Part shown: piece by piece, positions 1-21,933 of the stretch
Position numbering within the stretch: position 1 is the first letter of the stretch
How the letters are laid out: every line of letters starts with the position of its first letter
Origin: Lepidodermella squamata
Taxonomy: Eukaryota > Animalia > Gastrotricha
Assembly (NCBI GenBank): GCA_047495785.1
Contig: JBLDXI010000034.1
Location: forward strand, 1,240,001-1,304,000
Direction: 5' to 3'
DNA: 64,000 nt
The notes under the pieces: generated by a model
What the model was told of the DNA's origin: nothing
Database searches by the model: none
Seen by the model: the letters and a program-made list of their open reading frames with translations, nothing else
Translations under genes and position numbers: made by a program

Positions 1-3000
1 GCCGCGTCGATGTAGGCGAATCGCTTATCGACCGATAACGTCGACGCCCGTTTCGGTTTAAGGCCAATGAACATTTTGATCTTATCCATGATGAAGGCCA
101 ACATTTCATGGTCATTACCTCGTTTCGACGCGTCGCTGCGAACATCCTCGTACGCGACCATGAGAATAGCAACGAAAGCGTTGACGAGGAAAATGTTGAC
201 GAACAACGAGTAAAGGGTGAAGAAAACCGGCCCGACAAGCCAGTTGGAAGATTTGAGGCTCGGGAAATCGTAGACACCGAGCAGCATGCTGAAAAGCGAC
301 TCGAGCGACGTGATGAACGTACTGTACGCCTCAACTTTCGTGCCAAAGGCTAGGTAACCCATTTGGCCGAACGCAAGATAAACGACAAAGAATACCACGA
401 AGAAGGAGATCATCATGCCGCGCACCTGTTGCAGGGTGGTTAACATGATGACAAGTCGTCGGTTGAACCTTAGAAGTCGAATTATTTTCAAGTAGCCGAT
501 GAAAACGATGAAAGCCATGAAGCAGGAGACCATGTCGTCGTATGTTACAAAGATGTTCATGTTGACGTAGCCGGTTTTTCGGGTCTTGGCAAAGTTATCG
601 CCGACAACGAAACGGGACATCAAGTAACGCATGACGAACAACGCGGCGGCTACAATGCACATCAACAGATGCGTGAACTCGAGAACAGCCCACCAATCTT
701 GCCAGTACTGGCGTTTGTACTTGATAGCCAGCTTAATCTCTCGGGCGAATAGGAACAGCGCAACTGCGAGGGTTAAGAATTGGAACCCGAGTAGTACCAG
801 GGCGAAAACTCCGAAGTAAGGATCGATCTTTGTGATGTAGAACCTCGGGAAAAGCTGGACAGACCCGCCTGGGAAGAACTCGATAACAGTCTGGGAGATT
901 GCGAAGATATTCCTGTTCGGGCAATAGAGGTTGAACTCGAGGAAAATCGCCCGGGTCAACGCATCTATCCACTTGCTAGCCTTCAAAAACTCGAGCTTTT
1001 CCAGGGCCCCGTCAACCTTCCTACCCAGATCTACGATGTAACCCCCGCCGTTGTAGGTCGCAAGAACTGCGTCGAAGGGTAAGCCACGATCTGCGACGTT
1101 TGACTTGTAGGCGAAACCTCGCGAATCTCCCATAGTGATGAAACGGCCCTTCGAATCTGTGGTGGTGTTGCTCAGAGGGGCTAATTCCCAGCCAGCTGTG
1201 AAATTGCGAGTTTCCTCGTTGAACATCGAATAACCGTCGTAGCAGCTCTGCGTGATTGTTTTCCGCATCTTCGCCGCTGTTCTGCAAACATCAGGCTTCA
1301 CACGCAACTGCCGAATTCGGACAGACCCGACCAGGAATAGCGTTTGATCTTTCGTGAAGAGATCAGTTGCCGAGTTCATCTTGCCGTTGTACCAAGTCTT
1401 GTCGAGTAGCGAAGGCACTAGAGTGCGCTCAAGGTACGAGAAGATGTTCTCAAACGACAAAATGTTGAAGAATTTCTCGTCATGCGGGTCGGTGATTACG
1501 TTGTAAGCCTTAACAGAGGCTGGGTCTGAGAGGTTGTAGGCAGGAGTTGCGAGAATCGAAGAGTGGTAAACATTCCTCGCCTGCTTCTGCAGCATCATTG
1601 AATAGTCATCATGTAGCGAGTAAGCAACCATCATCAAGAGGTACAAGAAGCAGATGCATTGCGCGATTTCCTTAATGATCATCCACATCTTCTTCTCCTT
1701 CATACGGACCTCCTTAGCCAGTTTAAGCTCTTCAGGATCTGGAGGTAAGAAGACGTAGTCACGCTGGTTGATCTCTCCCATGTTATTCTTCCGGGCTAGA
1801 CGTTCCTCCTCAGACATTGGTTGATGCATGAAGACCTCGTCATCCTTCAATGAAGCCATTTCCTCAACATCTTCGTCCTTAGTCGGGCTCTTGATGATAA
1901 GGGCGTAGAACAAAGCCAGGACGAGAATCTTAGCCGGTTGCATGAGCAAGATGTCGGTGAAAAGTGAGATGACCATCGCGACAAGCCACTCCTGAGCTTT
2001 TTCCGGGCCCAACGCCCCGCCGAATTCAACAATCGCCCAGAATGCAACGCCGCAGGTACTGAAAGATAGGCAGTAAGCGACGATGATACACCACCAGGGT
2101 AGCTTGAATGGCTTCTTCTTCTTCTTAGCCTTCTCAGCCTTTCGCATAGCTTTCTTCGAAACTTTCACCTCGCCCTGTTCGATTGAGGCGATGACGGCTG
2201 AGTCTGGACGATCTGGCTGCCCGGCGGCTAAACGTTTCTTCCGATCTTCCTCGGCTACTTTGATTGCCTTCTGCCGGAACGCTTCCATCTTCTTCTCTTG
2301 CTTAGTCGGCCTGTGTCTACTCATGCGGAAAAGTTGGACAATCACCAAGTTGACAGGTACGACGATAAGGGCAGAGATAACACTCATCATAATCTTGGTA
2401 AGGGACATGCTGATCGGGCCGAGTTCGATCTTAGCAGAACCTGGCGGGTCTCGTGACTGGCCGAAGAACATGATGTTAGCGACCATGGTGCAGTACAGCA
2501 CTGCGATACAGCAGGTCAAACGTTGGCAGCGGGTGAATTTCGACAGAGGAGGTCGCGAGAACACTGATATCCAAATGTGGCCGTCCGTCAGTTTTCGCTG
2601 AGATTTCGTGAAGAAGAGATGCTCGAAACCAGCGAGTTCCTTCTTCCCAGCAACAGGCAAAATCCTCTCAACCATTCCGTCGTCTTCATCGATGCCAAGC
2701 CAGCGGTCGCAAAGGAAGTAGTACTGCTTATTGCGCTGGAGATCATGCACCAACATTCGGCTGAAGTACCAGTTCGGGTGTTTCCCAGAATTATCGTGCC
2801 AGATGCGGAGTTGGACCAACTTGCCGAGAGATCTTGGCGTAAGGAGTAGGAACGAGTCGATGTTACCTCGTTGCAAGACATCACGTTCGTCATCTTCCAA
2901 TAAATGGACTGGCGTTTCATGCTCGTCTCCGAGAATGATGAACGAAACACGGGCCGATGTCCCAGCGCCAGACCTAGTTCCGGTCCAAACTGTGAGTTCA

Positions 3001-6000
3001 TACGCGTATTTATCCCTCGGGTCGTTATCAGCCAATGGCGTAGTACCCCACTTCTTCTCATCCTCCAAGTCCTTCCTCCTAGCCCAGATCAACAGGGCGA
3101 AGAAGCAGCAGAAAATGCAAATGCCAAATGTGAAGCAAATCGGGTTCTGGTCGAGTTTCGAGAAGGCCGAGTCTTTCGGGTCGAATGTGTTCATCGGCAC
3201 GTCGAAGTTGGACGAGAAACTTGTCAAGTGATTGCAGAGGCACTGCGTCATACTCGGGTTACCGCCTGGGTTACTCAACGGCCCGACCCTACAGCCAGCA
3301 CTGCTCCAAGATTTGCTTGGTTTGTCGTAAAACTTGCACGAGGTTGCGAATGACGAGAATTTATACCCGGTTCGCACTGATTTCGCGTCCAAGTTCGTGT
3401 AAGATTCGTTCAAAGCATTGTGAGGCGTAATTTCCATCTTCTTCTCAGCGGCCCACTTTTGCAGGAATTTCCGAACCTCCGACTTCGGAATTGCCCTCAC
3501 ACCGATCTTGAACAACTTGGGATCTTTGGTTACGTTGACAATTCGATGGTCGAAGAAGCAGGTGTTGCGATCGGGTGTTGTTGGTCTCGAACAATTTTTC
3601 GGGACTTTCGGGGTAACAACGATATCAGGCGCTGGGGTTGTGGGTAGGACGAAGTCGCCGCGGCAAACGCCTTTCTTAGTAACAGTCCCATTACAGCACG
3701 TCACGTTGTAGATGATTGACGGGGTGCACTCCGGGGCATTCAGTATCGAAGCCGCTGTTGTAGTCGGAGCCGCTGTGGTGGTCGGCCGCGTTGTTGTAGG
3801 CTTCACAGTCGTCGTCGTCGGCGCAACAGCCGCTGCAGTGTTCGAGTAATTGAACGCCTGGACAGTTCCATTGACGGTTACCATGGATGAATTCGTTGCT
3901 GTAGCGTCGTACCAAACATAGCCCGTCGCCATCTCGTATTCGTCTTCAAACGCCCGTCGAGGCAACGTGCAGCTCAAATCGTAGTTCCAAGCTGTGGGGG
4001 TGTCGTTGTATTTGACGTAGACGAAAAACACGACCTCTTCATCGGTGAGATTCAGCGATTTCATCGTAACGTTCTGGAAGTCCCACATCAACATGGTTTG
4101 GTTGTTACTGGCACACGTCATGTTGAAAGGTAGCTCCGAGTTTGGAATATTCCTATCCGCACACAAGTTAGGCAGATCCCAAGGCACGACTTGTAGGAAG
4201 ATTGCGGAGAAAGCTGTTACGTTGAGAATCATCGACTTGACGCTACGTGGGTAGGGGGCTGACAACGTTTTCAGCATAGTTTCATCCGGGGTTTGCGGGT
4301 TCTTGGATTCGACCATGATTTCAATCTCAAATGGCAGGTCCTTTATAACAACTTCGCCGCCAGTGTTGTTTAGGAAGACCAATCCCTGAAGTTGGCTGTT
4401 CAAATCCGACGACGAGTCATCGAATTGGTAGGGGTTGCCGTTTTGCGTGCTAGCCTTCAACCGTAGGTCGACGTACTTCAACCGCTCAGATGGCGGCAGC
4501 GCATCAGGGTTGTTCTCATTCATCCCGGCGAAAGGATCTGTGGCTGAAAACATGACACTCGCATCGCCGATCATGAAAGTTCCGCAGTCATCGCCGCTTC
4601 CAGTCGGAATCACAGCGTTGTTAAGATCGCCGACGAAACGTTTTTGCAAATTGGCTGACATGCCCGTGCCGGAGATGATTGACGAGCTCTCCTGCAAGAC
4701 CTTCGCGCCAAGGACAATATCTGAAAGGAAAAATTTAACGATTCAATTTTGATTAGGTTGTGGATAAGTTACCGTGAATTGTGTCAAGGATATCCGTGAT
4801 TTCGTCAGTTCTCGCCATTGCAGCATCCGAGTTACCCCAGACGCTTACTTCAGTTTCACTTTCGCGCTTCCTTCGTTTCTTCGCGTCCGCTTCGCTGCTC
4901 TTCTCGCCGCTTGAGTCATCGCCACCCCTACCGGAATTCTTGTTCTTTCCACTTTTTTCGTCTTTTATTTGCTTCGCGTTGTACTCGAGAAGGTCGGCAG
5001 TTTTCCCAGCAGCTCCCATGCAAGTGGACCTTAATTTGAGATTAATTACAAAATCGTTGAATATGCAAAAATATCCATCAATAACATATTAAATAACTTA
5101 ATTTAAATTTTAAATTTTTTTGGATCAATTTGTATAATTGATTTTTTATTTTACCATAGGAAATGAACATTTAAAAAATATTTTTTTAGAGAAATTTACG
5201 TTGCGTCATCGAGACGATCTGCGTCTCTGGTTGGCGATGTCGAAATATTCTTGACAGCCTCAGTCAATTTCTTCATCAAAGCAATCGAATTGACGCAGGT
5301 CCGCTCCTCGGCAGCTTGTTCTGGAACCTCAACTGTAAAACCTACAGCACCGCAGCATGTTCTGACTGCGTTAGGGTCCCTGCTAAGCCCGTTCCTGTTG
5401 ATTGCGGTCAAAATCCACGTCGTGATGTTGAAGCGAACCTCGCGGATTTGTTTCAGCTCCAGATCGTAGCGAGCCTGATCCGCCGCGATTTTATCATCAA
5501 CCTCCTTCTTCTCCTTACTGGTCATCTTTTTGTAGGTGGCTGAGTCAACCGAATAAACTGGCTCGATTACTACGTCATTGCACATCGATGAGAAGGTGTA
5601 CATTGCCTGGCACACATCCTCGACTTTCATCAATGGGATCGAGTCGCGGTAAACTTTGGCCAGTCGAATGACCTCAGCCAAAGACGCCATCGGCTCAACT
5701 CGAACTGTGAATTTGACTCGGGTCATCTGCATGGAGAAAGAGTGAAAAATTGTGAAAATCTAGCGTAAATACACTAAGTTACCGAATCAAACGGATCTGT
5801 AGCATCGACGTAGATAGTGACCAGGTAGTTCTCCTCGGGCACACCCGCCGGTAGTTTGATGCCAGTCTTGATGGAGGGGCTTGCTAGAGTCGGCGTTAGA
5901 ACAACCAGCGGACAGTAGCTGCAAGATTGCATTGAGAAGGAGAATTTGGATAGGATGGAATCGCTCTTGAATCCGGTGCAATCGAAGTTGAACGGCGTGT

Positions 6001-9000
6001 ACATTGCGAGGCCATTCGCCTTGTTGGACACACAAGAGACATTCGCTCCTCCTGGGGGTTTGCTCACATACTGAAAACGACGAATTTAAGGGAAGTAAAG
6101 ACACATCCGGAAACTTACGAAAGCAAGCGAGGAGACACCCATACGGGGATTACCAGCTCGGATAACGCCCACGTAAGCGATGAAGTAACGGTAGTATTCG
6201 CTTGGTCCGAACAGGTTAGCATTCAATGACAAATCATCGACCTTGCGACCCGTGGAAGTTTTGTTCTGAAAAGGGCGAAAAGATTCGTAAAAATGGATGA
6301 AAGCTGATTGATGAAACTCACCAGCCAACTATCGAAAGGCCAGGCGAAATCCACGACTGAAGTTTCTAGATCTTCCATCAGATCGGTGACAGTCTTCGAA
6401 CTTGGGACGCGGATGATTTGCCAGTTGAAGAAGTACATACGACCTGGGATGCGGTCTGTAATCAATCCGTGGAACGAGCCTCGAGACGTCGGGTTGTATC
6501 GCACGATATCTTTGAAAGGATAGACGCAGTTGGTGACGACGCGAATCAAAGCCTGAGGAGCCGAGCCTCGCTCGAGACGGTACGATTGTCTCGCAATTGT
6601 GAATCGGTCGTCTTTCGTGACAATCGCCATCAAGTTATAGGTCTGATTTTCGAATTGGTAACTCGAATCGATAGTAAGCGTGTTGTCTTTGTTGATGTAG
6701 GACAACTGGATTGTGCAATCCTCAGTCGCTTCGGTGCCGTTGTTACCGCACAGAGCTTTCGGGACCTTACGAGTGAAGTTTTTCGGGTTGAGACCAGGGA
6801 AGCCCCAAGTGGTATCAGGATCATCTGGGCGAATCGTGTGGTAGCCGGTTGTGAAGCAGCCGTTCATTTGATAACCATCCGCCTTAAGGTACTCGTCATC
6901 AGTCGTGCACTTACTCCACTTGAAGTCGGGGTAAGCTTTCGGGTAGCCACTTGGGTTTTTGATGAAAGCTTGGACCTGAGCCATTGAGGTGAAAACCGGC
7001 CAACTGCCGTCGCAATCTCGCTTGCAGAAGTAATAGACATTCATCCCGACCTTGCTCTGTTGCAGTCCGCCGATATCTGGATCGTAGGACAGGGAGTAGG
7101 CGTTCATTTTGACATCTTGCCGGAAAACCAAGTCTCGGCGAGCACCCGCTGGCGTAAGACCTACTACCAGGTCGGATTTGACCACTTCAAATTCTTTGTA
7201 GATCGTATTCTCGATTTCATCTTCCTCAAGCATAGACGCCCAGAGGGAAAGGCGGTAGAAGCCGTATTCTAGTTTTGTCGCTGGGAACATGAGCGATTTA
7301 TCTAGAGGTGATGTCATATTGTAGACACCGTAGAACTTCTGCTTTAAAACTGATGCTTCCAAATACAGGTTGCCAACGTCTTTCCAAGCTGCTGAAGCTG
7401 TTGCTCGGTACAACATGGTCCAATTCATACCAATATAGCGTGACGAGCTGCAGTTCATCAGGATTCCAGCACTAACAACGAGGTCATCCTTCTTGTAGCT
7501 AACAGTTGGCGCGTCAATGTAGGTCTTCGGGTACGAGCAAGGACCTCGCGTGACTTTGGCGAGCTTCCTCAACTGAGTCGGATGTGTTGTAACATTGATT
7601 ACCTGGACAAAGTTCCGAACCCGCACTGTCACGTTATAGTTACCCTTCCTGTAGTACTGTAGAAAAATATGTTCAATCAATTCACGTTCTTCAATTGAAG
7701 AATTTCATACCATTGCTGCGACGGAGGTGATTCCATCAGCAATGTCTTCCGGAGAGACTCGCCTGAGCGATTTCATAGTTTCCTGATCGTAAGAATCAGC
7801 GCACATGTATTCCGAGCCGTACAGCTGAATCCTTGTTTGGCCTGTAACCAGCATGTTAGAGCCGTAGTCGATTTCAACACAGCCATCAGTTGGGAATCGA
7901 TCGTAGGTTAGCCAAAGTGGGAAAGAAGTGTTCTCTGCAGCTGGCCCATACTGTAGCAACTGAACATTTTGCGCCGGTTTTTGGAGGTAAATCGTTATCG
8001 AAGTTGTAGCTGTATCGACCGGATTTGATGCTGAAAAACAGTTCAAACTAAGCTTTAGATCTAGGAATTTGGGCATAACCTACCAACTACAATCAAATTC
8101 AAGCCGCAGTTCTCGAGTCTTGAATAGCAAGGTGTATCGTAGTTGAATTTCCGGATGACCCAATTTGGCGTGTTAGTCCAAGGTCCCGAGCAATCGGTGA
8201 TGTTACCCTCAACATTCGTGTAGAAACAGTACCGCAAGCCCTCGCCCAGTTTAGCAGTAGCCGTGATTCGAAGAGGCTTCCCTGATGGGAAAAACGCCTG
8301 CGAGTACGGCTTTGTGCCAAGTTTCGGGTCAATCCTCGGGAAGCCAAACACAAAATCCGGGTTAGTTTCATTCTCAGCGTAACGAACGCCCAATCGCAGG
8401 TTAGTAACCGAGACATAAACCGTGTAGGATGTTTTAAATGTTTCCATACTAGCCAAGTTAGCGATGAGAATACTCGGCTCATAGTAAGTTGCGTTGTTGT
8501 AGGTGTACGGGAACTGCAAACACGCTTGCCAGACGCCTAAATAACCCGCATTAATGATTTTTCCGAAAACCAAAACGAAACAAACCGTCAAACGTGTCGG
8601 CCAAAGTTGGATTGCATTTCAACGTAGCGTTGGGTGACATGCTATTATCACCATACTAAAAAGAAATGTTAAATTCCAACTTAATGTTTCAAGGTTAACA
8701 TTACGTAGAAGACGTAGTAAGGCTCGCTTGGGGCTTGGACAGCCGTGTTGATCCACAGGGTGTAGACCACATTTGAATAACCCATATCGTCATCAGCCGA
8801 TTTGAACGTCAACTTACCCGCCTTAGGATTCGGCGTTAGCTTAAAGCCCAACGGATCGACCTTGTACTGCACGATGACTGGGCAGCAAGGCGCCATTGGG
8901 TATGGGGCATAGGTGCTGACTAAATTCGTCCCGTTAATCTTCGGCAGATACACGCCAACTTGATCGAAAGTGTGGGTGTAAGTTGTGACATTCCATTCGT

Positions 9001-12000
9001 AGACCGGGGATAGAGTTGTTGTGTTATCAGGGTTAGGCACGACAACCTGCCAGACAAATCGAGTTCCCCAAAGCCAGGTAACGTTGAATGTAACAGTACG
9101 GCCAGGCGAGATGTAACGCGTGGTGATAGGGCTGATCTGAAGGCCATAGATCTCCTCGTCAACCTCGAACGTAACGTTGCCATTAACCGATCCGACTCTG
9201 TTGAAAACTTCCATGTAAACAGTTTTTGTGCCATAGGTAGAATAGCCATGGGTCACAGTTGCCATGCACATGTCCTTCACTGCTTTATTACTCGAAGCTG
9301 GGGGCAGTTTCGTTGCATCGAATCGATTCGTGTAGTTCGAGCCATCCGCGAAGTCGAGGTACATTGACGCGTTAGAAGGCCAGGCGAAGGAGTACCCGGT
9401 GTAGTTGTACTTGAAATCAACCTTGGCAATGCCGTTGTAAGGGATCTTATTAGGACTCGTTGCTGAGTAGTTGAATGTAGTCGGAACTGGCTCGAGTTGC
9501 ACGTAGATATCGTAAACGAATGTTTTCACGTAGGGCAAATAGTTGTTTGCATAGGCTGTGATGTAGAAGCCACCTAAGCTTGGATAGTTGACCAAAGGTA
9601 TATCAATCAGAGGGGAATTCTCGAGAACGAAGTCATACTGCAAGAAATTGAATGAAAATCAGAATGAAAAGTTCGAGAAACTCACGTAATTCCAATAAGT
9701 CGTCGGTTTAGCATCAGCTGCTCCATAGGTTATGGTTAGATTGCAACGGGTACAGTTGTCCATAGTTACATACAGCTGAATGGTCTGGTTTTGAAGGGCG
9801 CCATGAGTCCGAGTGGCATTTGTCCGAATCTTCAGGTTCTGAACAGGATAGTCGACCCAGAGAATCGTTTGAGTGTCCAGTGGATCAGACAGCAGGTTAT
9901 CAATTGTCAAGTTAGACCAATACCAGCCTACAGCCGATCCATACTGAGTCGGCGAGATGATCATATAGCCCTTCTTAATGCTCGGAGTTATCGTGACATT
10001 GGGCGATGCCATGCTGTTGAAGGTCGCATTGGCAACTGGGAATGAATAAGATGCTGATTCGGTGTAGGTGAACGGGATACTTGCCCATTCGAAGATTGGC
10101 AAGGCTGGAATCTGCGGAATCTTAACACTCTGAATCCTCGACTGAACTGCAACTTTGATTGGACCAGCCGTTACATTATTTCGGATCGAGTAAGCCTTAG
10201 CCGACATGTAGTAGTCAGCCGTGCCCGAGTATTGCTTCTCAGCGTAGTCGACAAACATGGACGCAGAGCAGCCGACCAACTTCATTCGATAACTCGGCTT
10301 GGCACCTTGCCAGGTCAATGGAATAATCGTAATTGCCTTCAGCAAGATCGGAACTGGGAGGCTGATGTACTTAACCGGCTCATCGGCTGAATTGCCCTGG
10401 AACGTGATGTCAAGACCCGGCGGGAATTGGTAGTAGTAATCCGCGCTTCTGTCGAAAGTATACAAGATTTTGAAGCTCGTGATCCATTCATTAGCATCAG
10501 CTCGTTTAGCCAGAATAATTCCGTTGAGCCATATTGTGTATTGGAATTGAACGGTCAGAGTTTCGTTCACGTTAACCGGGACGAAGCCTTTGTCGGTCAT
10601 CTTAACTTTCGCGCCACTTGTCAGGTCAGTATCGTCACTAGATCGCTCGAAACGTTTTGTAGCCTCCAACATATCGCCCTGGCACAAATCGTCCCGCATG
10701 GCGTAGATGTCTGTCTGGGTGTAGCTCTCGCGAAGACCGAACCAATCATCAGATGGCTTGAGATTTGTCATCTGGCAAGAAACACCATCGTATTGGACAG
10801 TTCGGCAGTCAAGTTCCTGTGTGGCCAAGCACTGACGAATGCACCAGTCGGGGGAAATTTTGGCTGTAAGAAGAAAAATTCATAAAATATCATTACAAAT
10901 TCCGAAAATTAGGAAATTTCATACTTGGAGTCTGGCAAACACTAACAGGTGTCCAGATATCTTGGGTGAAATCGACGGCTGTTCCGTTCCACATCGAACT
11001 CCAGCCACCTTGAGTAGGTTCGCTGGCCATTCCAGCGAAATAGCTCTGTCTGCCCCACATATCGATGAAACCCATCGAAGAGGTGAGACGCCTGTAGCCC
11101 ATACCGAATGCTTTGTTCGAAGCCAATCTCGTAGCCATCTTCAACTCATCGGTATTAATCGGTGAAATCGGGAGGGAATCTTCAATTTGACAAGCAACGC
11201 GAGCCGTGTCGTAGTCAGTGCCGGGTTGGATGTGCATCTCGACGGGGTACGCCCGGTAGCAAGCTCCGGCCCATGGCACCCAGTTAGGTGGGCAGAGGGC
11301 TGCGGGTTGTTCGCAGATGAATGGCGCCGGGGTGGCACAGGCGAACGGAATCATTCGGAACTTATCAGCTCGAGATAGGACAGTACAAGCCGGGGTAGCA
11401 GCGGCTGTGGGCATGCTTGGCGCCCACATTGCTTTGTGAACCGGTACAGGAGACCTAGCGCGAACATCGTCCTCCCAAACCCAGGTTTTAGTCGCGGCGC
11501 GGTAGACCATGCCAACAAAAGCTTGGCCATCACTGACTGGAATCAAAGATTGGACGAACCAATGCTCCTCGGGTGATCGAATCGTCGCAAGACCACCGCC
11601 GTCAGTTTTGCAATCAGCAAGGGCCATAGTCACTGATTTCGAGGTTGAGTAGTACTTGAAGCATCGGCCGTTGAATTCGGCGTAGGTCGCCGGGCAAGTG
11701 CCAGCCCAAGTCCTCGCCCCGGGTATAGCCGGTTTCGCGCAGACGTAGGCATTCAATTCACTGCCAGTGCCTTCATACCATCGATCCGTGTTTGCTAAGT
11801 AGTAGGCGTAACCTAATTGGGCAGAGCTTGGGTTTGCAGATGCCCAAGGCTTATTGCCTCCGGCTGTATCGGTACCGTCACGCCAAACCCAATTCCCTGA
11901 GGTTCCGACCTCTGCCAGACCAATCCAGATGTTAACACCCGCATTAGTGACGTCAAAAGCATCTACAAAGAAGGTCTGATTAGCTGCGGTGTTGAGCGAG

Positions 12001-15000
12001 GCTAGATGGGCGCCGTAGTTGTCAAAACAGTCCTTCTCAGCATTCGCCCAGGTTCGCTTCGTCCCGGTGAGTAACTTGTAACACATCGTTGTATCGCTGT
12101 TATTCGTCCAGCCTAACGGGCAAGACGAGGCGGGAGTTTTCGGGAAAACGTAACGGCGAGATGCAGTCCTAATCGCGTAGCGTGTTGGTTTCGTGCCGTA
12201 GACAGACTTCTCGCAGATGTAGCCGTCCATGTCGCTGCAGGTAACAATTTTGTAGTAGCCGTTCGGACCCATGACGACGCAGTTTTCGCCCTGGCCAGGT
12301 GTTGCTGGTGATCCGCCCTCGAAATTCGTGAAACCTGGGACGAAATCTTGCCAACCGTCGTACAGGTACCAGGTGTTGTTCGAAACGGGTCGCCACAAAG
12401 CAAAATAGTAGTAGATCCTACGAAAAAATCCCTCATTTCAATAAAATTAGTTAGCATCGATGCCTTACTGGTTGTTAGTGTCCATGGCCATTTTGTACAG
12501 TAAATTGTAGGTATTTTGCGATTCAATTACAGCCAGCTGGCCCCCGAGCTGTCTACACGACGTGACAGCTGTTATGTAAGTCGAAAGGGGCGTGAAAACT
12601 CGGAAGCAGCGGTTTGTATCAGGATCGTAATACCAGCCAGGGGTGGGCCCGCAATACGATTGAACTGTTAAGAAAAATCAATATGTTTAGCTATTCGATC
12701 GTCGAAAATCGACTTACTTGCAGCTTCTCGCTTGCAAATGAAAGGCCTATTAGATGTGCAGTTATCGTTTTGCAGGCGACGTGAGGCGTAGTCGTAGTAC
12801 CCGCACTGCCCAGCTCCCTTTTGCGGGAAAGTCCCGGAAATTTCCTGCCAAAACGGTGGCGGGAGAGACTTTTTGTCCTCTTGCGACACCCAGAAGTCAA
12901 ATTGGTCCTTCAACTGCGCGTAGCCAGTCCAAGCGCCCACATCAGTTGGACCTCCCGCGCTGGTCATGACCTGTTTCACGAAGTCCCACTCGGCGTTTGA
13001 GCTGCCGTAGACGAGACTGCCTCCTAGAGATGCGCAGTAGTACTCGGCTCTTTCGTAAGGCAATTTTGTCGAAAAGAAAAACTTGTAGCAGGCATCCACG
13101 CTTATCGCAGAAATGCCAGAGACCCAGCCAGTTGGGCAAGGGGCGAAGGTCCTTGTCGCTACATCAGGTTTTGTCCCATTCACGTCCAGATCGATCAGAG
13201 TCAAGGTATTACTAGCCTGGGCGAATGATAGGACGGCTGTTGAAGATGAGCCGATCTCTGTTACAGGAGGATTCGCCATGTACATTGACAGTTTCTCGAT
13301 CGGGAACACAATCATGATTTGAGTCATGATTGAACCGCTGGCCACCAAGTTCCAAGCACTCATAGTGATGTTGTAAGAGCCATAGAGACGGTAGACGTGG
13401 TAATAGGTCTTGTTTCGAGTAGTGTAGTCGAATAGCAGCGGCTTTGTGCCATCTCCCCAGTCCACCTTATAGCTGCACTTGGTACCGTTGTGCGATGGGA
13501 AGGTGAAAGCCGTCAAATCAGCGGCGTTGGCTAAAGATTGAATTGACATACAATCGAGCAATTGGGAATTCAAACTTACAAATCGGATCGTAGACCGGCG
13601 CGAACCCTTCGCAGCGGTACTGGACTTCAAGCATGTAGCTGTAAGTTAGGATGTTGTCAGGGAACATCGCGTCCTGGGCGGTCATCGTGATAGTATGCTG
13701 TCCAGCAGGCACCGAGCCCCATTTACGGCCGAAACTGATACCAACCGAGGTCAAAGTAATCAGCTTGATCATATGGACGTAGGCACTGCCTACTAGGGTC
13801 ACTCCAGACCTTGATAGAACGAATCCCGCGGAATTTCGAGCGCCGAATCCAGCTACCGTGTCTTGAAAGGTCATTCTGTCGATGAAAATGTTATCCACCT
13901 TAAAATTGCAAATTCAGTTCAACTTACTCAAGAAGACCGGGTTGGGGGGTAGAAGGGGCGGAATATACCACCAGCTTGCCCTCATTTGTACCAGCAGCTC
14001 CAACGCCTGTTGCGGAGGTACGGTAGTAGGCCATGATCATACCCAGGGTGACCTCAAACACCTCAGAATCGTCGAGATAGATCACCTGATTGCCAGTCAT
14101 CGCGAAGTACTTCTTAATCTCAAACGCAAGTTTGTAGTCGACGTTGAGCGACTTGAAGACACCCACCCGGTCACCTAGGGTGTCGGTGTTTGATCGCGAG
14201 CATTGCGGGTACGGGTTTTTGAAGTAGTTCGACCCATAAGCCGAGCACTTGTAACCATCGAACGCCTTCTGCTTCTTGCAAACCGTAGCCATTGTCACGC
14301 AGCTGTGCGAAATCGGGCAGAAGTACGTGCCAGCCGTCAAACAAACTGGCTGGTAGATTTGAATGGTAATCCAACCAGCCTGGGCGATGACTGCCTCAAT
14401 AGCAAAGACCGACGCATTTTGCTTAACCATTTGATTAGGCATGAAGTAGATGTAACCACCGCCCGAATCTGCTGTAACTACTGAGGTCGGAGTTGGAGGG
14501 GTAGTCATGCCAACCTCAACGCGTTGGGCTCGGTGGGAGACAGGTCCGTACTTGTCGAACCCATAATTCGTAGTCAGGATGAATTCACTCGCGCCGACAA
14601 CTCTTGCCTCACATGCTGCGTAGTTTCCGTACAGAATAGCGATAGGGCACATATTGAGGCGGATTGTCCGCATCCTAGTTCCGGCTTTGTAATCCCACCA
14701 TAGGGTATGGGTCGCTCCCTCAGCGTCAATGCCAGTGAACACAACTCGCTGCCAGCCAAATGTCCTAGGACGATAGACATAATCCAGCCCATTGACACGT
14801 TCGACCGGGGCAATTTGAGTCGGAGCCCTTCGGTTCAGATTTCCGAAAATCGTAGCGTTGTAACGAACAAAGGTACCAGCAGTTCGAGTTAGGCTGAAAC
14901 GAATCGGCTTGAAGGCGATATCGAAGAACCCGAATTTGTTTGTCGTATCGGCCAACTGACCGTAAAGCTCGAGCTGTAGGCAAGGCTGGGTGTTGTAGGC

Positions 15001-18000
15001 GGTTGGCGTAATGCGGATTTCGTTTGCAGTGATTGGGGAAGAGAAGCGGAACTTCGCGACAGTTGTCGCATCGCCACTAACTGGAATCAATGTTGTAGCT
15101 GTTCCCAATGGTCCAATCGATACCCAACCACTTCCATTGTTATACTGGGCCGATGTGTAGTTGTACAAAGAATACGTTGTGCCACCGTCGGTCGAGAATT
15201 CCAGCGTAGCCTGCTTGACCCATCTGACTGAGCCATCTGGAGCTCCGGCGAACCAGATTTCGTTGATGTTGTGCGGTGCTCGAAGGTCGATGACAATATT
15301 AGCCCCGGGCACATCGCCGGTATCGACGCACCAGGCCGAATCAGTCCCGAGACGGGCGTTTGAAGCTGGGGTGCTCGTGTTGGAGACCCCGTACGACTGG
15401 AGTTGGACATTCAATAGCTGACCAGAGGATAGGCCGAGAGTTCGAACTTCAAAGAAGGAATAAAATAAGATTCCGGGTAATTACGAGAATTTCGACTTAC
15501 GTGAATTTGTGGGTAGGGTGTACTGGCAAATGTAGGCCATTCTTCGGGTCTGATCGCATTCAGCCGTACGCCAGCGGTATTGCGTCCTCGAATCAGCGTA
15601 GACACACTGCCTGCTAGTAAGTTCCGCCCTGTCATCCCCAGCCCAGTACGTGAAGTCAGTGGTCTTATCAAGGTTCGTTCCGTCAGACCAAACGAATTTT
15701 TTAGTCAGCGCTGAGTAGGAAAGGCCGAGCCAAACAGGTCGCTGCAGGTCGGTTATGTTGATCGCAAAGTCGTATTGCGCAGGATTGGCTGGTTTCCAAA
15801 GTTTAGCTGCTGGTACGTAGTTCTGGCAGGCAGCTTTAGCCGTGTTGTAGGGAACAGTCCAGTTCAGATACAGAAAGCATTGGCCTTGGAACAATCTCCA
15901 GCCCATTGCGCATTTGGTTGCTGTAAAATATTATTAAGTTAAAGTATTCCTCCTTAAAAAATGTTGCATACTCGAGACAACATCGAGGTTGAGGCCAGCT
16001 GGTTTCTTGCAAGCCTATAGGAAATTCGGAATTTTATCAAATTTCCATTAAGAATGACGTTGAATTACGTAGTTTTGCTGTGAGAGGGGGTTAACGGCTT
16101 GCCACATGAAAGGCTTTGTCATAGAGACGCATCCCCATTGATTGCTTTGACCCGGTTGACCGCCGTTCCAGTTGGCGTAGAACGCGGGCTGGCCGTCAGG
16201 GTTCAAACCGCGACCTTGAGTTCCAACAGTAGCGTTCAAGCCAATGCAGAAGACTTCGCTCGATGGTCTGATAAATTAAAGTGAAAATTCACATTTCCGG
16301 AAGTAATTAGGAAGTTGAACTTACAAAACGCTGGCACCAGCTTCAACGATGAAGCTGTTCTCATCAGCACTTTCAATTTGAAGCAACTGGCCGCCATACG
16401 ACGCACAATTCGCCTGAGCTGTGTTGTAGTCAGCACGTGTCGTGAAGATTCTGTAACAATTCGGGCCACGAAGAGTCCAGCCAGGCAGGCAATCTTATCA
16501 AAAAGTACTAGTCTATGGTCGGTTAAATTAGAAAAAATCTCTTACTTGCGTAACCAACAGAAGCAATGGCTGGGTTCGAAGTCTTGCGATTGGCGACAGT
16601 TCGGTAGACGCTGAAGTGGTTAGCCCCGCCGCACCAATCTCTGGCGTTTCCATCGCATGGGACGTTGCACTTCTCTGGGGTCTCCGGGCCATCAGTCGCT
16701 AGAGTGTTTGCGCAGAGACAAGTATCTCCACTCCTCAGACCAGCGAACTCGTAATTGGCATCACCGCAAACCTGGCGACACATTGCTACGGTCAAGTTAT
16801 CAGACTGCCAGTAGCCGGGGTTGAAGGTGAAATCGTTCGACCCGGCAATGTGGCCCGGGTAACAGCCGATGAAGTCAGGGTGCGAGCAGTACCTCTGGGT
16901 TTTCCTGACAGACGTCTCAGACTGAATACCGTGATTGTACAACTGAGCGCACTGCATCGACCCGGTGAAGGACATGTCGTTGGTGGTTGAAGTCAGAGGG
17001 AAGGCAGCAGTTCGGCCGAGGTTCAACGAGCCAGATGTTTGGCAAACAGTTTTTCTTGCAAGGGTCAGCGTCGACTGAGTGATACTGTTGACAATCAACC
17101 CGGTCTGGGCGGCTCCATTAATGAAAAAGTTGAAGTTATCAGACTGGAAGTCGTACGAAACCGCGATATGGACCCAAGTTCCGCTAGGAATCACCCCGGG
17201 TTCGTTAACAGTTAGAGAAACACCGTCATTCGCCGCGAAGTTGATGTCAGTATCAATTGTGATGTTATTGCCCTTGCCCATGCTTTGCAAGTCGTCGTAC
17301 ATAGCGTTGGTTCTCGAGTGGAAACTCACTGCGGTACCACCCCGGTTGACAAAGGCGTAGAATGCCACGGTGAACGACTTGGTTTGTGAGCAGACGTCAA
17401 GAGTCTTCTGGAAATCCTGCATCGCCCAGAAGTATTGACCAGGGCTGCCTGGGAAGGCGAAAGCAGCTTGAGATACGCCGAAAACACTTGGAGTAGGTTC
17501 CAACATTGAAAATCTCGCATGGTTCGGGCCTCGCATGTTCATCCCTCCAGATTGGGCAGACATAGGCCACAGCGCGACTGGTTTGATTGGCTCGAGAACG
17601 AAATCGGAGTGAAGCCCGTTATGAAGATCGTAGCACTTCTGCCGGATTACAGCCAAGTCCAGGGCGTTCAACGAGTCTAGGTAGATAGCAGCGCAAGCCA
17701 AAGCGACATTTCCGCCTATATTTGTACCCTGCCGGCCGAATTTGAACGAACCAGTCAGTGCGTACAGGCCGTCGTCGAATTCGTATAGGGTAGCGTTGAA
17801 GTAGCTCCAAATCGCGCATTGAGTCGTATCCCGGTAAACGCGGTAGACCCAGTTCGCTCGGTCAAAGACTACGGCAATCTGATACCAGACTCCGCTTGAG
17901 AGTCCAGTGCAGGTCAGTGTTTGGGTTGAGGATGGTTTGGTGTAGGACACGAGTTTAACGGTGAATGAGCTGCTTGTTGTGAAGCTGATCAAGAGACCGC

Positions 18001-21000
18001 CGGCTTGAGAGGCCTGATCGCCGGCATAGTACTCCCACGACCAGATAACGCTGTTCAATCCATTGTATCTCGCGTTGATTACGTAAGAGTAACCAGCTGG
18101 GAAATATTGCGACTTGTAGCCAAGGTCCAATAACTCAGCGACGTTGTTGTTATCGGCTTGAAGGACCTGGGCGTGGCCTGTTGTTGTGTTCCTGTAGAAT
18201 GTCGAGGTATTCACAGCTCCTCCTGGTCCTGCTGCCCAAACGATATCGCCTAGACCAGTGTGGGAGTTGTGGCCGCTGATATCCATACCAGCGAATAGGC
18301 TACCCATTGGCCAGAAAGCGTGGACATTCTGTGGGTCGTGAAGAGGCCAGCTGGGTGCTTGGTCGCAAACTGGGATGTCACAGTAGTCCCACGATGTGGC
18401 TGATGGTCCGGTGAAACACCATGGCTTATTTCGGATAACTGCGTTTGGCTCGGGATTTCGGCAATATGCATCCGCTTTCAGAACATTCTGCAATAAAGTG
18501 AGAATCCCAGGTAACTGGTGAAGCTATTGAAATGATTTTGCGTCCAAGGGCCACAGTATGAATAGGGTGATCAGGGTGATTAGGGTGATTCGGGGTGACC
18601 TTGGTGATCTGGGTGATCAGGGTGATTCGGGGATCCCAAGTTCTTATTTTCTCTTTGCCCTTTTCCCCCTTTTCCGTCTTCCCTTATTTTCTCACAATCC
18701 CCTTGTGTTGTGGGTGAGCTATACCAATAAGAAAGAAACATCAAACTTACGCCCTCTGGGTACATGGCGGCGTTGTAGTAGTTTTCGCCCGGTTGGTCGA
18801 CCCATTTCCTGCATTTCGCGAAGTTCTTCGTCCAGCTCACTTTACCGGAGTACTCCCAGCCACCCTGTGACGTATGGTAGCACTGAGTCGTATCGACAGG
18901 CCGGCCATAGGCTGAGATAATCGCAGCATGGCACATGTCCATGGCTTTTGGAACCTCCTCATCCCTGATATCAGTGTCATACATCATGAAGCACGCCATT
19001 TTGCCGGAGAATCGCTGCGTATCAGCGAATCGATAGCCGATAGTCATAGGGCTGAACGTGTTGATAATATGCCAGCCAATTGCCTGATCCACAACGGTCA
19101 CATTGCCGAGACGAATCGTCAAGCGACGTGTTTGCCGGCTGTATCTAACAAACAGCCAGTTCCAGCCAACAATCGAGCTGTTATGCGCCGTAGTCGATGA
19201 GAAAAGAGTGGCCGAATTGCATTTGTAAGCCGATGTGTAGAAGATGTCGGTAGTTTTCGAAAACGCAACTCGGAACCCACAACCGCCATTTGTATCGATG
19301 TGCTCAAACAGCGTCTGCACATCACCCGCCAGTTTCCCATCGCGGTTAACCCAGGCTGAAACGTAGGCCATATAGGTGACTGAGTCATTGGTACCAATCG
19401 TGAAGGGGTTCTCTCTATCGACGGTTTGAATGTCGATTCCACTTTTCGGTTCGTTGTAGAACTTCGTAGCGGAGTAAGGGTGGCCTAATGGGCCCGTGCT
19501 GGTACCAAGACGGCCCCGGGTGTTACCATGCATATTGCGGCCTGAGATGTCTTGAAGACCGTAGGCACGTCCAAGGGGCAGGAAGAACCTCAGGTGTTGT
19601 GGTTTGAAAATTGTCCCTGAAACTGTGGTGCCGACACCCAGAACTTGCTGGCATGAAGCCATGGCCGCCGTGATATCGGCAGCAACCAAAGCTGTGGAGA
19701 AAACGGTAAAGCAGCTTATTTTGCCCTTGAACCACGTGGTCGTAGCTGTTGTGTAGCTTCGCCCGACGTAAATATTTGAGTGAGCTTCAATATCGCCTTG
19801 GCCAATGTTCCGGGTAGCTCCGCACAGGCTGGTACCCTGCCAGATTTCGAGGTTGCCACCGGTGTAGTCGTAGCTAACAGTGAGGTACTGCCATTTGGCG
19901 ACTTGCAGGCAACCAGTTGCATTCTCCATCTTCCAAACTGAGAAACCACCAACAGCTGCAAATGTGACTCGGATATCGGTTCCGCTGACAATCCGAACCG
20001 TTGTGGTCTGTAAAAAGATGTTTAAAATGGTTAGAAAAAAATAAAAAATTCAACAATTTTAATTATTAACATAAAATTTCATTAAATAGGCCGTAATTTA
20101 GTTTAGATTTAAATACTGAATAATCTATTTAGAAAAATTGTAAAACTCACAAATGGTGTTCTGAACTGATAACGACCAAAAGAAAATACATGGCCGCCCT
20201 CGCTTGCTGAGCCAACAAAAACCCAGGCAGAGATGGCGAAGCTTCTACGATAGAAATTAATCGCAGCTCCCAGGGTTCTTTGATTCGAAGCCAGCAGCAG
20301 GTTGACGTACGTCGTCAAGCCATCGAAAATAAGACTGCCGTTGATCTGCATCTGGGGACCGAAGCCGTACGTATGGTTCGTGATGTCACCCTGGAAGATG
20401 CGACCTGAAGCTTCCCGGGCGCGATGGAACTCATTGAGAGGCCAAAGACCGATGAGGTTGTCTTGTATAGGGAAAGAAACCCCGAGCCGCCCTGAAATAG
20501 TCCGATCCATTGTCGTTTCAAGCTGGGCCTGTTGGCACCATTGAGATGCTTCGCCGATCAGAAATGGTGGAACAGCACCAGCCTCGCCGCTGATCAAGCA
20601 AGCGATCGAGCCGCTCCAGAAAACATCAGTTGGGACACCGTTGTCATCGAGCGGGCCCTGACGACGACCGATCTCGAAACCGCCGCTCATCTCAACTGCG
20701 ATCTGGCCAATGGCTGAGTTGAGGCAGGGGGTGGAGCCTGAGGTACCCTTCCAGAAGAACACGTTGCCATTAGTGAAGTCGTAGTTGACAGTAACCCAAG
20801 TCCATTGATTCAGCGAAACACAGCTCGAAGGCACGATTAGTTGGTAGGCCGGGAGAGGGACTGGCCCAATGTCTGTCTTAGTGACGAAATCAAGCAGTAG
20901 CGTGCCGTTGCCCAGCGACCAAATGTTGAAGCCGTAGTGGGTTGTGTTGAACTTGTACTGCAGAATCGGCCCGACTGAGTTGGTTAGGTACAGGTTGAAC

Positions 21001-21933
21001 ATGAAGTAGAAGCTTGTGTTCAGATAGTTGACCGCGTCAATGCTTGAGTTGAAAGCGACGTAGCTTGGTATGCCGGATGGCAGGGTAACTGCAGAGTCTG
21101 GCTTGCCATTCGGACCTGTTGTCAGCGTTGCATTGATAAAATGGCCGTCTTGGAAGCTCATATTGTTGTTTCGATAACCCAGCCAATCCATAGCTCCGGT
21201 GAGTCGATTGAAGGTCACGAAGAGCTCAGGATTCAAAGACGGGATGTAAATGTCTGGAATTGACACAAAATCTTCATCTAGAACAGACGATTGAAGTTCT
21301 AACTTACAATACATGCAAACGCTTGGGAAAGCCTGGGTGCAAGCTGCCGCTGCCCATTTGTTGTTGGCGGCTCCGGTTTGGATCGAAGCACACTGACCAG
21401 CTGCTGAAGTGGATGGCTCGCTGGTCCCCCAAGGCAGGGCGTTGACGAAATTTGACCCAGCCATAGACACATAGGCTGAACCTTGGTACTGAGCCCCTAC
21501 CCATGTTTGCAGGTTCCTAAAAGAAAATGTTTAGCGAATTTCAGTAAAATTAAGGTGGTTTAACTTACGGTGAAGTCCTTAGTGTTGCGAGGAACACTGC
21601 TTCATCAGAATCTCTTGGCACAGATAAATGAGCGCCTGGTATGATAGCACTGCAAGCTGTATCTGCAGAACTGAAGTCGAGAGGAGCTGGGTTGTAGTAG
21701 TGCTACAATCGAAATCTTAGGAAAAAAGCCATCAGCAATACAGGAATAGCTTACGCAAGCAAAATTGTATTCAACCCAATCTGGCGGGCAGTAGTTCAAC
21801 GTGGTAACAGGTTGTAACAAACTGACCCCGGCCAGGAGAACAGAAATTATTGTGGCACGGTTGATCTAGTAGTTTATTTTCGAAATTGATGCGACTTTCA
21901 GTTTAATTTCAAACTTACGCCACTCGGCAACAT
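1..21933 (-). CDS. Giant polycystin-1-family (PKD1-like/REJ-like) receptor-channel subunit; 3' end lies beyond the left edge
   Basis: ATG at 21933 gives MLPSG|INRATIISVLLAGVSLLQPVTT (signal peptide). ~26 GT-AG introns, mostly 48-61 bp, join the minus-strand ORFs. Last visible exon 4720-1 has the same frame at both ends and the ORF track shows no stop in it. It encodes GPS (CLCNHL/TSF), TM1, PLAT and TRPP-like S4-S6 (RLLRFNRR...SLFSMLLGVYDF...LVNAFVAIL). Confidence 0.95.
3190..3345 (-). other. GAIN/GPS autoproteolysis motif of the polycystin
   Basis: SCKFYDKPSKSWSSAGCRVG...TQCLCNHL^TSFSSNF immediately before TM1; predicted cut between L (3225-3227) and T (3222-3224). Confidence 0.92.
5730..7560 (-). 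other. REJ module of the polycystin
   Basis: LEYGFYRLSL, LVVGL, SLSYDPD, YTPFNFDCTGF, LPAGVPEENYLVTIYVDATDPFDS are REJ-type motifs between the PKD repeats and GAIN. Confidence 0.85.
10930..13145 (-). other. Five tandem C-type lectin-like domains
   Basis: Repeated CPxGW...CY, AxxxC...LAS, WIGL, WxWxDG, FICE/K patterns in ORFs 10893-12398 and 12668-13630 and the exon between them. Confidence 0.88.
16600..16880 (-). other. WSC domain
   Basis: FIGCY...LTVAMCRQVC...FAGLRSGDTCLCAN...CNVPCDGNARDWCGGANHFSVY. Confidence 0.9.
18365..18885 (-). other. Kringle domain split by intron 18488-18750
   Basis: CYHTSQGGWEYSGKVSWTKNFAKCRKW...|...AYCRNPEP...KPWCFTG...WDYCDIPVC. Confidence 0.92.
18564..18634 (+). 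repeat. Intronic 9-bp minisatellite (GGGTGATYR)n, ~8 units
   Basis: gggtgatca gggtgatta gggtgattc ggggtgacc ... inside the enlarged polycystin intron 18488-18750. Confidence 0.85.

Follow-up and report, generated by a model that had tools for sequence, protein, structure and literature searches.

Positions 1 to 21,933 of a 64,000-nucleotide (nt) stretch of the gastrotrich Lepidodermella squamata (GenBank assembly GCA_047495785.1, contig JBLDXI010000034.1, positions 1,240,001 to 1,304,000 of the forward strand; the whole stretch is called 'the window' below) carry, on the minus strand, a long series of lectin-like and other extracellular modules followed by a polycystin-type channel. The question raised by this locus is whether these parts belong to a single gene of the polycystin-1 (PC1) type, and what such a receptor would recognise. 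A preliminary description of the sequence had proposed one PC1 protein of ~6,700+ amino acids (aa), in which roughly 18 binding modules coupled to a TRPP-type subunit would act as a multivalent glycan or substrate sensor. The analysis reported here points to a giant member of the PC1 orthogroup, with the core WSC - PKD - REJ - GPS - PLAT - 11 transmembrane (TM) segments, whereas the glycan-sensor part of the proposal was not borne out in the form given.

Gene model and reading frame

The PC1-type gene was read on the minus strand from an ATG at 21933, and its frame was still open at window positions 1-3. A stop-to-stop scan revealed successive long open pieces between ~21,865 and position 3, the longest of which (1,580 codons) was the last in the chain and crosses the left window edge. 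From the ATG at 21933, a splice-site dynamic programme over GT..AG pairs joined these pieces into 25 exons and 6,734 codons with 0 stops. A better acceptor at 18487 (TTATTGCAG followed by AAT), inside the kringle, removes 12 residues, giving ~6,722 codons and a canonical six-Cys kringle; the length proposed earlier was thus reproduced. All 24 introns have GT..AG ends and are mostly 48-61 nt long, with GTAAGT...YAG signals in the short gaps between open pieces. The longest intron of the gene (18750..18488, ~263 nt) lies within the kringle and contains a short tandem array of GATCACCC-like units, open in one frame. The G+C content was 46-52% in the gene region (1-22000) and 37-45% in the window remainder (26000-64000); the higher value is as expected where coding sequence is dense and introns are very short.

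GPS, PLAT and channel part

Hydropathy indicated 11 TM segments downstream of the GPS, with the PLAT domain placed between TM1 and TM2, that is, in the first cytosolic loop. A predicted cleavage motif, CNHL/TSF, is intact at aa 5659, 30 residues ahead of TM1. Pfam assigned Polycystin_dom (1.6e-35) and PKD_channel (1.3e-29), and the best match in the PDB was human polycystin-1 (6a70_B, 6.8e-62). The channel half matched PKD2L1 and PKD2 in the PDB at 1e-44 to 1e-48, with ~35% identity over the last six TM segments; in this alignment the sequence at the pore filter is LLGVYDF, compared with ILGDFDY and ILGDINF, and part of the filter as well as the S6 helix resembles PKD2 and PKD2L1. Assignment of the predicted protein to the PC1 family of receptor-channel subunits is thereby well supported at the sequence level.

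Placement in the PC1 orthogroup and collinear core

A HMMER search with aa 5,155-6,354 over 1.84 billion representatives returned 968 proteins at E<=1e-30, among which the best true PKD1-like matches had 42% identity. The window protein is 1.5 times as long as the longest PKD1-like protein among the best 150 of these 968 (4,443 aa), a comparison that covers relatives of up to 4,500 aa and does not establish it as the longest known. Multi-PLAT LOXHD1-like proteins, which topped the representative search, were set aside as they matched by PLAT only.

In a quick tree of 104 rows, the window protein fell in a 6-row clade (support 95, starred) with Tubulanus, Lingula, a Logan protein and Macrostomum, the sister of which was an ambulacrarian clade (100, starred). 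A more careful tree of 33 rows placed it in a five-row clade (98/91, starred) with P0005, a relative from another organism, and three Macrostomum proteins, and paired it with Macrostomum at 94/78. The larger clade, which contains WSC-bearing PC1-like proteins, was recovered in both (100, starred, 12 rows, and 100/99, starred, 14 rows, respectively), and its members were the Lingula, Tubulanus, Macrostomum, Ptychodera, Glandiceps and crinoid proteins. The gene is accordingly assigned, by its predicted protein, to a spiralian subclade of the WSC-bearing PC1 orthogroup; the trees were built without vertebrate PKD1, and the assignment does not extend to orthology with human PKD1 itself.

With orthologues of 3,000-4,100 aa the window protein shares a collinear core (WSC, mid/PKD region, PKD-repeat region, REJ and the GPS-to-channel part). 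These include the proteins of Ptychodera flava (XP_070579640, 4,103 aa), Glandiceps talaboti (XP_077979562, 4,056 aa), Lingula anatina (XP_013386005, 3,692 aa) and Tubulanus polymorphus (XP_074648069, 2,999 aa), and PLAT/REJ proteins of Macrostomum lignano, all of the same clade. Identity between these invertebrate orthologues and the window protein was 33-46% over the GPS-to-channel part, whereas CTLD, LamG and kringle modules were all undetected in them by profiles. The difference is made up of three extra blocks of ~1,511, 555 and 876 residues (in total ~2,900 aa), the remainder of ~3,800 residues being of orthologue size. Block 1 is N-terminal and consists of a C-type lectin-like domain (CTLD), five laminin G-like (LamG) units and the kringle; block 2, after the WSC, of two CTLDs and a discoidin domain; and block 3, after the first PKD region, of five CTLDs, a PAN domain and a second discoidin domain. 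P0005 has the same module order as the window gene (PKD - PAN - discoidin - GPS - PLAT), which argues that the PAN-discoidin insert predates the lineage of the window gene.

Exon sharing and intron phases

The exon structure indicates that the kringle/LamG/CTLD blocks and the REJ-channel part form one intact gene, in agreement with the earlier proposal of a single gene with a TRPP-type channel part. Five introns split domains (CTLD1, LamG2, the kringle, CTLD2 and CTLD5), the separated parts of which match the respective profiles. Moreover, exon 6 joins LamG4-5 with the WSC, exon 10 joins the first discoidin domain with the mid region, exon 12 joins the mid region with CTLD4, and exon 15 joins the PAN and second discoidin domains with the start of the PKD-repeat region. 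Every extra block thus has an exon in common with the core, so that separate lectin and channel genes could be obtained only by breaking the core known from orthologues. The introns at module boundaries (WSC/CTLD2, CTLD2/CTLD3, CTLD3/discoidin, CTLD4/CTLD5 and CTLD8/PAN) are all of phase 1 (five of five). Phase-1 introns at module borders are the usual mark of exon shuffling, and this arrangement fits a gain of the modules by such shuffling. Exons 7-8, 9 and 13-14 (15501-16493; 10925-12664) are of phase 1-1, so that skipping would keep the frame, which makes them possible cassette exons for CTLD2, CTLD3 and CTLD5-8.

Ectodomain modules

Between the signal peptide and the TM1 region the ectodomain comprises ~5,650 residues, closing with the GAIN/GPS. 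From N to C terminus, the order of modules is signal peptide, CTLD, three LamG-like units, kringle, two LamG-like units, WSC, two CTLDs, discoidin, PKD-like, five CTLDs, PAN, discoidin, putative PKD repeats, REJ, GPS, PLAT and the 11 TM segments with TOP and channel domains (Table 1). Modules were assigned by Pfam on stop-free pieces, with PDB searches and iterated internal profiles as further support, and by leave-one-out profiles that were built from Pfam-supported copies alone and calibrated on shuffles. The order listed in the preliminary description was recovered by this combination, and its count of ~18 extra binding modules also stood, except that two of them (LamG4 and CTLD8) are degenerate.

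Eight CTLDs were delimited by the iterated profile (aa 28-156, 1619-1747, 1747-1880, 2620-2759, 2764-2898, 2924-3056, 3066-3198 and 3200-3328). In the array of CTLD4-8, Lectin_C was matched by Pfam at 7e-13, 3.7e-33, 1.5e-14 and 1.8e-11; CTLD8, the last unit of the array, is degenerate. Five LamG-like units were likewise found by iterated profile at a spacing of ~250 residues, three of them before the kringle and two after. Laminin_G_3 matches over the stop-free pieces were 5e-12, 5.7e-11 and 8e-6; LamG2, LamG3 and LamG5 pass the Pfam cut-off or come near it, and the match of LamG2 begins at profile position 55, coinciding with the exon start. LamG1 had support only from a leave-one-out profile and the ESM Atlas, and LamG4 only from the ESM Atlas and shared motifs. 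The motifs FWPM..GMDISG, W..IAV.YD and F.G...C are common to the four LamG units compared, and LamG4 has FWPM..GMDISG and F.G...C in alignment. Leave-one-out profiles backed CTLD1, CTLD2, CTLD5 and LamG1 and gave no support to CTLD8 (8.6 bits, inside the shuffled range) or LamG4.

The kringle profile was covered by two halves with the intron between them (positions 4-33 at 14.8 bits, 0.036, and 48-79 at 30.2 bits, 5.6e-7). The WSC, which shares its exon with LamG4-5 and the C-terminal half of the kringle, is the first core module common to the orthologues. Two PKD matches were obtained with Pfam (~1e-4, near threshold); the rest of 7711-10042 aligns to the PKD-repeat regions of orthologues at 22-24% identity.

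Other searches within the ectodomain were negative. AlphaFold2 on LamG1 and LamG4 with four-row paralogue alignments gave unusable models (pLDDT 39 and 37, respectively), and a PDB search with LamG5 gave no match. Single-seed profile iteration over the protein revealed no further PKD or discoidin copies. Self-BLAST of the whole protein returned the identity match alone, whereas tiled BLAST did reveal repeats. The protein of exon 6 (kringle C-terminal half, LamG4-5 and WSC; 647 aa) had no homologue at E<=0.001 among proteins 356-1,132 aa long.

Table 1. Features of the polycystin-1-type gene, in window coordinates, from the 5' to the 3' end of the coding strand.
Feature	Positions	Strand	Evidence
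Whole coding region in the window (C-terminal tail outside)	1..21933	-	Stop-free pieces, splice model, 18487 acceptor
Start codon in 15-nt exon 1, 53-nt intron, hydrophobic signal-like segment aa 10-28	21800..21933	-	Splice signals, hydropathy
CTLD1, split across exons 2-4	21309..21799	-	Lectin_C weak 0.0016; leave-one-out 3.2e-12
LamG-like unit 1	20487..21179	-	Leave-one-out 7.9e-7; Atlas Laminin_G_3 neighbours 0.98; no Pfam match
LamG-like unit 2, split by intron 20150..20008	19564..20339	-	Laminin_G_3 4.9e-12
LamG-like unit 3	18889..19536	-	Pfam Laminin_G_3 8e-6
Kringle, six Cys, split by intron 18750..18488	18365..18882	-	Pfam, both halves
LamG-like unit 4, degenerate	17582..18289	-	Atlas Laminin_G_3 neighbours 0.98, shared motifs; no Pfam match
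LamG-like unit 5	16862..17539	-	Pfam Laminin_G_3 5.1e-9
WSC	16625..16873	-	Pfam 1.3e-15; aligned to WSC of Ptychodera and Glandiceps PC1-like proteins
CTLD2, exons 7-8, phase-1 introns on either side	16059..16552	-	Pfam partial 9e-4; leave-one-out 2.6e-11
CTLD3, exon 9 (phase 1-1 exon)	15520..15920	-	Pfam 7.8e-12
Discoidin (F5/8C) 1, exon shared with mid region	14941..15423	-	Pfam 1.3e-13; PDB factor V C, neuropilin b
Conserved mid region with one PKD (13337-13489)	13166..14658	-	BLAST collinearity 4e-25 to P0010, P0005; PKD 6e-5
CTLD4-8 array (12728-13147, 12207-12662, 11733-12131, 11307-11705, 10926-11303)	10926..13147	-	Pfam Lectin_C, internal profile (CTLD8 weak); PDB DEC-205, PLA2R, FcRY
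PAN/apple-like	10610..10855	-	PAN_1 0.036 here; 8.5e-6 in aligned part of relative P0005
Discoidin (F5/8C) 2	10250..10567	-	Pfam 3.4e-7; PDB retinoschisin, CASPR2, factor VIII
Divergent PKD-repeat region	7711..10042	-	Pfam PKD 9.3e-5 at 9161-9376; collinear with orthologue PKD repeats
REJ module	4777..7656	-	Pfam 3.1e-13 (6226-7704), 1.2e-6 (5777-6085)
GAIN-like region closing in GPS (3213-3341)	3189..4773	-	Pfam GPS 6.2e-8; HL/T motif at 3222-3230
TM1 (3084-3140) and cytosolic PLAT (2658-3002)	2658..3140	-	Hydropathy; Pfam PLAT 2.6e-15
TM2-5, TOP/polycystin domain (855-1466), six-TM channel domain (141-773)	3..2519	-	Pfam, PDB alignments

Sequencing-run evidence and the upstream neighbour

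Three sequencing runs (called X1, X2 and X3) were compared with window positions 6301-12300 (6,000 letters). Run X1, whose status as RNA is uncertain, produced 47 short contigs over exons 15-20, with identity of >=99% in 30 cases, and a joint at 8028/8084 agreed with the predicted intron 8083..8031. The X1 contigs are tentatively in agreement with transcription and splicing, short of proof of a single 20-kilobase (kb) message. Contigs of the same run on 6301-10500 also contained many 'opposite strands' joints ~100 nt apart, which most likely arose as artefacts, by folding back of short contigs of low depth, and have no biological meaning. A variant form of CTLD7 (11241-11599) was found in the X3 contigs, in which 8 codon differences alter the amino acid and 6 are silent. 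Of the former, five are clustered at aa 3148-3154, within the long loop that precedes the site of the sugar-binding triplet; the variant may represent an allele, a difference between strains or a paralogue.

Upstream, at 22673-25908 of the minus strand and continuing further upstream, lies a frame with many ankyrin repeats (Ank_2, 1e-40) followed by Ion_trans (3e-10). The neighbour thus has the architecture of a TRPA-like channel, and its stop codon is located 740 nt before the polycystin ATG.

Alternative readings

Two readings other than a single functional gene were considered. If a secreted multi-lectin protein and a separate polycystin-like channel were encoded by two or more genes, joined only by the splice model, the restriction of the RNA contigs to 6.3-10.5 kb, the absence of a full-length cDNA and the close spacing of genes in this genome, as seen for the TRPA-like neighbour, would all be accommodated; however, the frame is open through all 24 junctions, introns fall inside several domains, and no internal ATG with a signal peptide was found at any block border. 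Any cut would also break a core whose segments keep the orthologue order and share exons with the extra blocks, so that this division appears extremely improbable. Hardly more credible is a reading in which the extra blocks, as silent or decaying insertions or as an artefact of assembly, are skipped to leave an ordinary functional protein of ~3,900 aa. The phase 1-1 exons 7-8, 9 and 13-14 are indeed frame-neutral and LamG4 and CTLD8 degenerate, but ~2,900 extra codons without one stop are incompatible with neutrality, and skipping is impossible for blocks joined to core segments within one exon. Furthermore, a 32,972-nt contig of run X2 matched 6301-12300 without a difference, X2 probably being the window's own source and not independent, and the PAN and discoidin domains occur at the same place in P0005.

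As to what the ectodomain binds, it had been suggested that the 18 modules form a multivalent glycan sensor, in which CTL-like, WSC and discoidin modules bind carbohydrates of the egg, of microbes or of the substrate and gate the TRPP channel. The WSC, F5/8C and CTLD families do have known carbohydrate-binding members, the amino-acid changes of the X3 variant cluster in the long loop of CTLD7, and the carbohydrate-recognition domains of sea-urchin REJ proteins have been implicated in egg-jelly recognition and are under positive selection (PMC1934368). In alignment, however, the combination of EPN/QPD and WND needed for Ca-dependent sugar binding is retained by none of the eight CTLDs, and WND is missing from all of them. 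The triplet positions read EPS, QPG, SPA, NPS and MPT, CTLD3 and CTLD4 having a non-aligning stretch there and CTLD8 no clear equivalent, and some conserved cysteines are lacking in CTLD2, CTLD6 and CTLD8. The tandem array is nearest to DEC-205, PLA2R and FcRY among PDB entries, that is, to the mannose-receptor family, most CTLDs of which do not bind sugar. LamG, kringle and PAN families, for their part, have many protein-binding members. A sensor of glycans in the form proposed is therefore considered unlikely.

Several points weigh against one intact gene with a functional product. The RNA evidence from X1 is fragmentary: there is a single joint, the shorter side of which spans 23 letters, and full-length transcripts were not found. 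The 15-nt first exon is predicted from splice signals alone, and three further elements (the donor GTCATT at 16059, the 70-nt exon 17 and the acceptor at 5029) are consensus-only. LamG4, CTLD8 and most PKD repeats are under the family thresholds. In the pore, Val replaces the first filter Asp of PKD2 (LGV vs LGD), which makes the pore contribution uncertain. Finally, the frame exits the window ~34 residues after S6, so that the C-terminal tail is located beyond the sequence, together with any PKD2-binding coiled coil; in vertebrate polycystin-1 it is a C-terminal coiled coil that binds PKD2. Since orthologue alignments to the window protein stop 50-60 residues short of the orthologues' own C-termini, probably fewer than ~100 residues lie outside the window. 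All points considered, one intact giant gene of the PC1 orthogroup, encoding a PKD2-partnered receptor-channel in ciliated sensory cells, is the joint explanation that we judge quite probable.

Comparison with known polycystins and lectins

Human polycystin-1 (PKD1; 6a70_B, 8z6f_A; 4,303 aa) shares with the window protein the WSC, CTLD, a putative PKD-repeat region, REJ, HL/T GPS, PLAT, 11 TM segments and TOP domain. It differs in having one CTLD against eight, and the window gene has in addition the five LamG units, the kringle, two discoidin domains and the PAN domain. LRR and LDL-A domains, in contrast, were not detected in the window gene by the Pfam scan of stop-free pieces, and two PKD repeats alone were found at Pfam level. 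Compared with the solved PC1 chain, PKD2 and PKD2L1 are much closer to the channel half. As the preliminary description had stated, the predicted protein is far longer than human PC1, and it also far exceeds the sea-urchin REJ proteins (<=3,716 aa; PMC1934368) and the PC1 of Nematostella (3,457 aa), which is hair-cell specific (PMC8846589). SpREJ1-10 belong to the PKD1 family, with CTLDs in SpREJ1-3 and a WSC in SpREJ6, 7 and 10, next to REJ, GPS and PLAT; by contrast with the window gene, these proteins (1,450-3,716 aa) have at most two CTLDs and are without LamG, kringle or discoidin modules (PMC1934368). A coral/anemone REJ protein has the order WSC-PKD-REJ-GPS-PLAT (PMC4890752).

Members of the mannose-receptor family (DEC-205/LY75, PLA2R, FcRY and Endo180) have tandem CTLDs and gave the best PDB matches of CTLD6-7 (1e-33 to 3e-27). 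They differ, however, in being single-pass endocytic receptors with N-terminal ricin-type and FNII domains, and the likeness is limited to the CTLD array.

An ectodomain composition of the same type as in the window gene was found in amphioxus, in Branchiostoma floridae XP_035672789 (4,443 aa) and B. belcheri KAI8504762 (3,288 aa). In these proteins Laminin_G_3/pentraxin, Lectin_C (up to three) and F5/8C (up to four) domains precede the REJ-GPS-PLAT-channel part, and two LamG units and one CTLD were found in XP_035672789 by window-derived profiles. They belong, however, to another family clade, have extra CUB, EGF, SEA and Mucin2_WxxW domains, lack the WSC and the kringle, and reach at most two thirds of the length of the window protein. 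None of the 150 closest family representatives had a kringle, matched the counts of eight CTLDs and five LamG units or reached this length, and a literature search for a polycystin with kringle or laminin G domains found no description of such an architecture. The earlier view that the architecture was unrecognised held in these respects. It did not hold for the mosaic as such: the same architecture being common in annotated invertebrate PKD1-like proteins had been named as grounds for rejecting novelty, and XP_035672789 and KAI8504762 go part of the way towards this. Judged by domain content, the architecture type is already present in annotated genomes, in another family clade, and the gene does not represent a new kind of system.

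Proposed mechanism and implications

From the solved PC1-PC2 and PKD1L3-PKD2L1 complexes and from knowledge of the family, we infer that the protein would be cleaved at the GPS HL/T motif and would assemble 1:3 with a PKD2-type subunit, as in those complexes, to act as a receptor-channel in ciliated sensory cells. Relatives have sensory roles: in planarians, mechanosensation needs pkd1L-2, pkd2L-1 and pkd2-4, and chemosensation needs pkd1L-1 with pkd2-4 (PMC11448475), and the PC1 of Nematostella marks hair cells (PMC8846589). The long and mostly non-sugar-type module array may bind several extracellular partners, such as matrix, mucus and surface proteins, with glycan or lipid contacts possibly added by the discoidin, WSC and LamG modules. 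A bound partner or a mechanical pull would then act on the GAIN/stalk and, through it, on the pore.

A further and rather doubtful idea is that the gene is the largest of a lineage-specific, diversified set of PC1-type genes, in which different recognition ectodomains (here of lectin-like/LamG type) were shuffled onto one GAIN-11TM-channel chassis. If true, such a set would amount to a channel-coupled chemosensory or pattern-recognition repertoire rather than a single mechanosensor, and further isoforms could arise through the frame-neutral phase 1-1 exons.

For annotation, the locus is a warning in that a 20-kb coding sequence is likely to be cut into several models by gene finders; the Nematostella PC1 gene had earlier been split into two models (PMC8846589). 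Several of the database relatives look fragmentary. No new class of system is at hand, as lectin/pentraxin/discoidin mosaics of the PKD1-like type are already annotated in amphioxus, though unstudied. The ligands of the polycystin-1 ectodomain and the route by which a signal reaches the channel are an open question in the field. Here, the ectodomain offers discrete, expressible pieces for ligand screens, and a natural orthologue that gained ~2,900 residues of binding modules while keeping the GPS, PLAT, TOP domain and a PKD2-like pore illustrates how freely the polycystin-1 chassis takes up new ectodomain modules.

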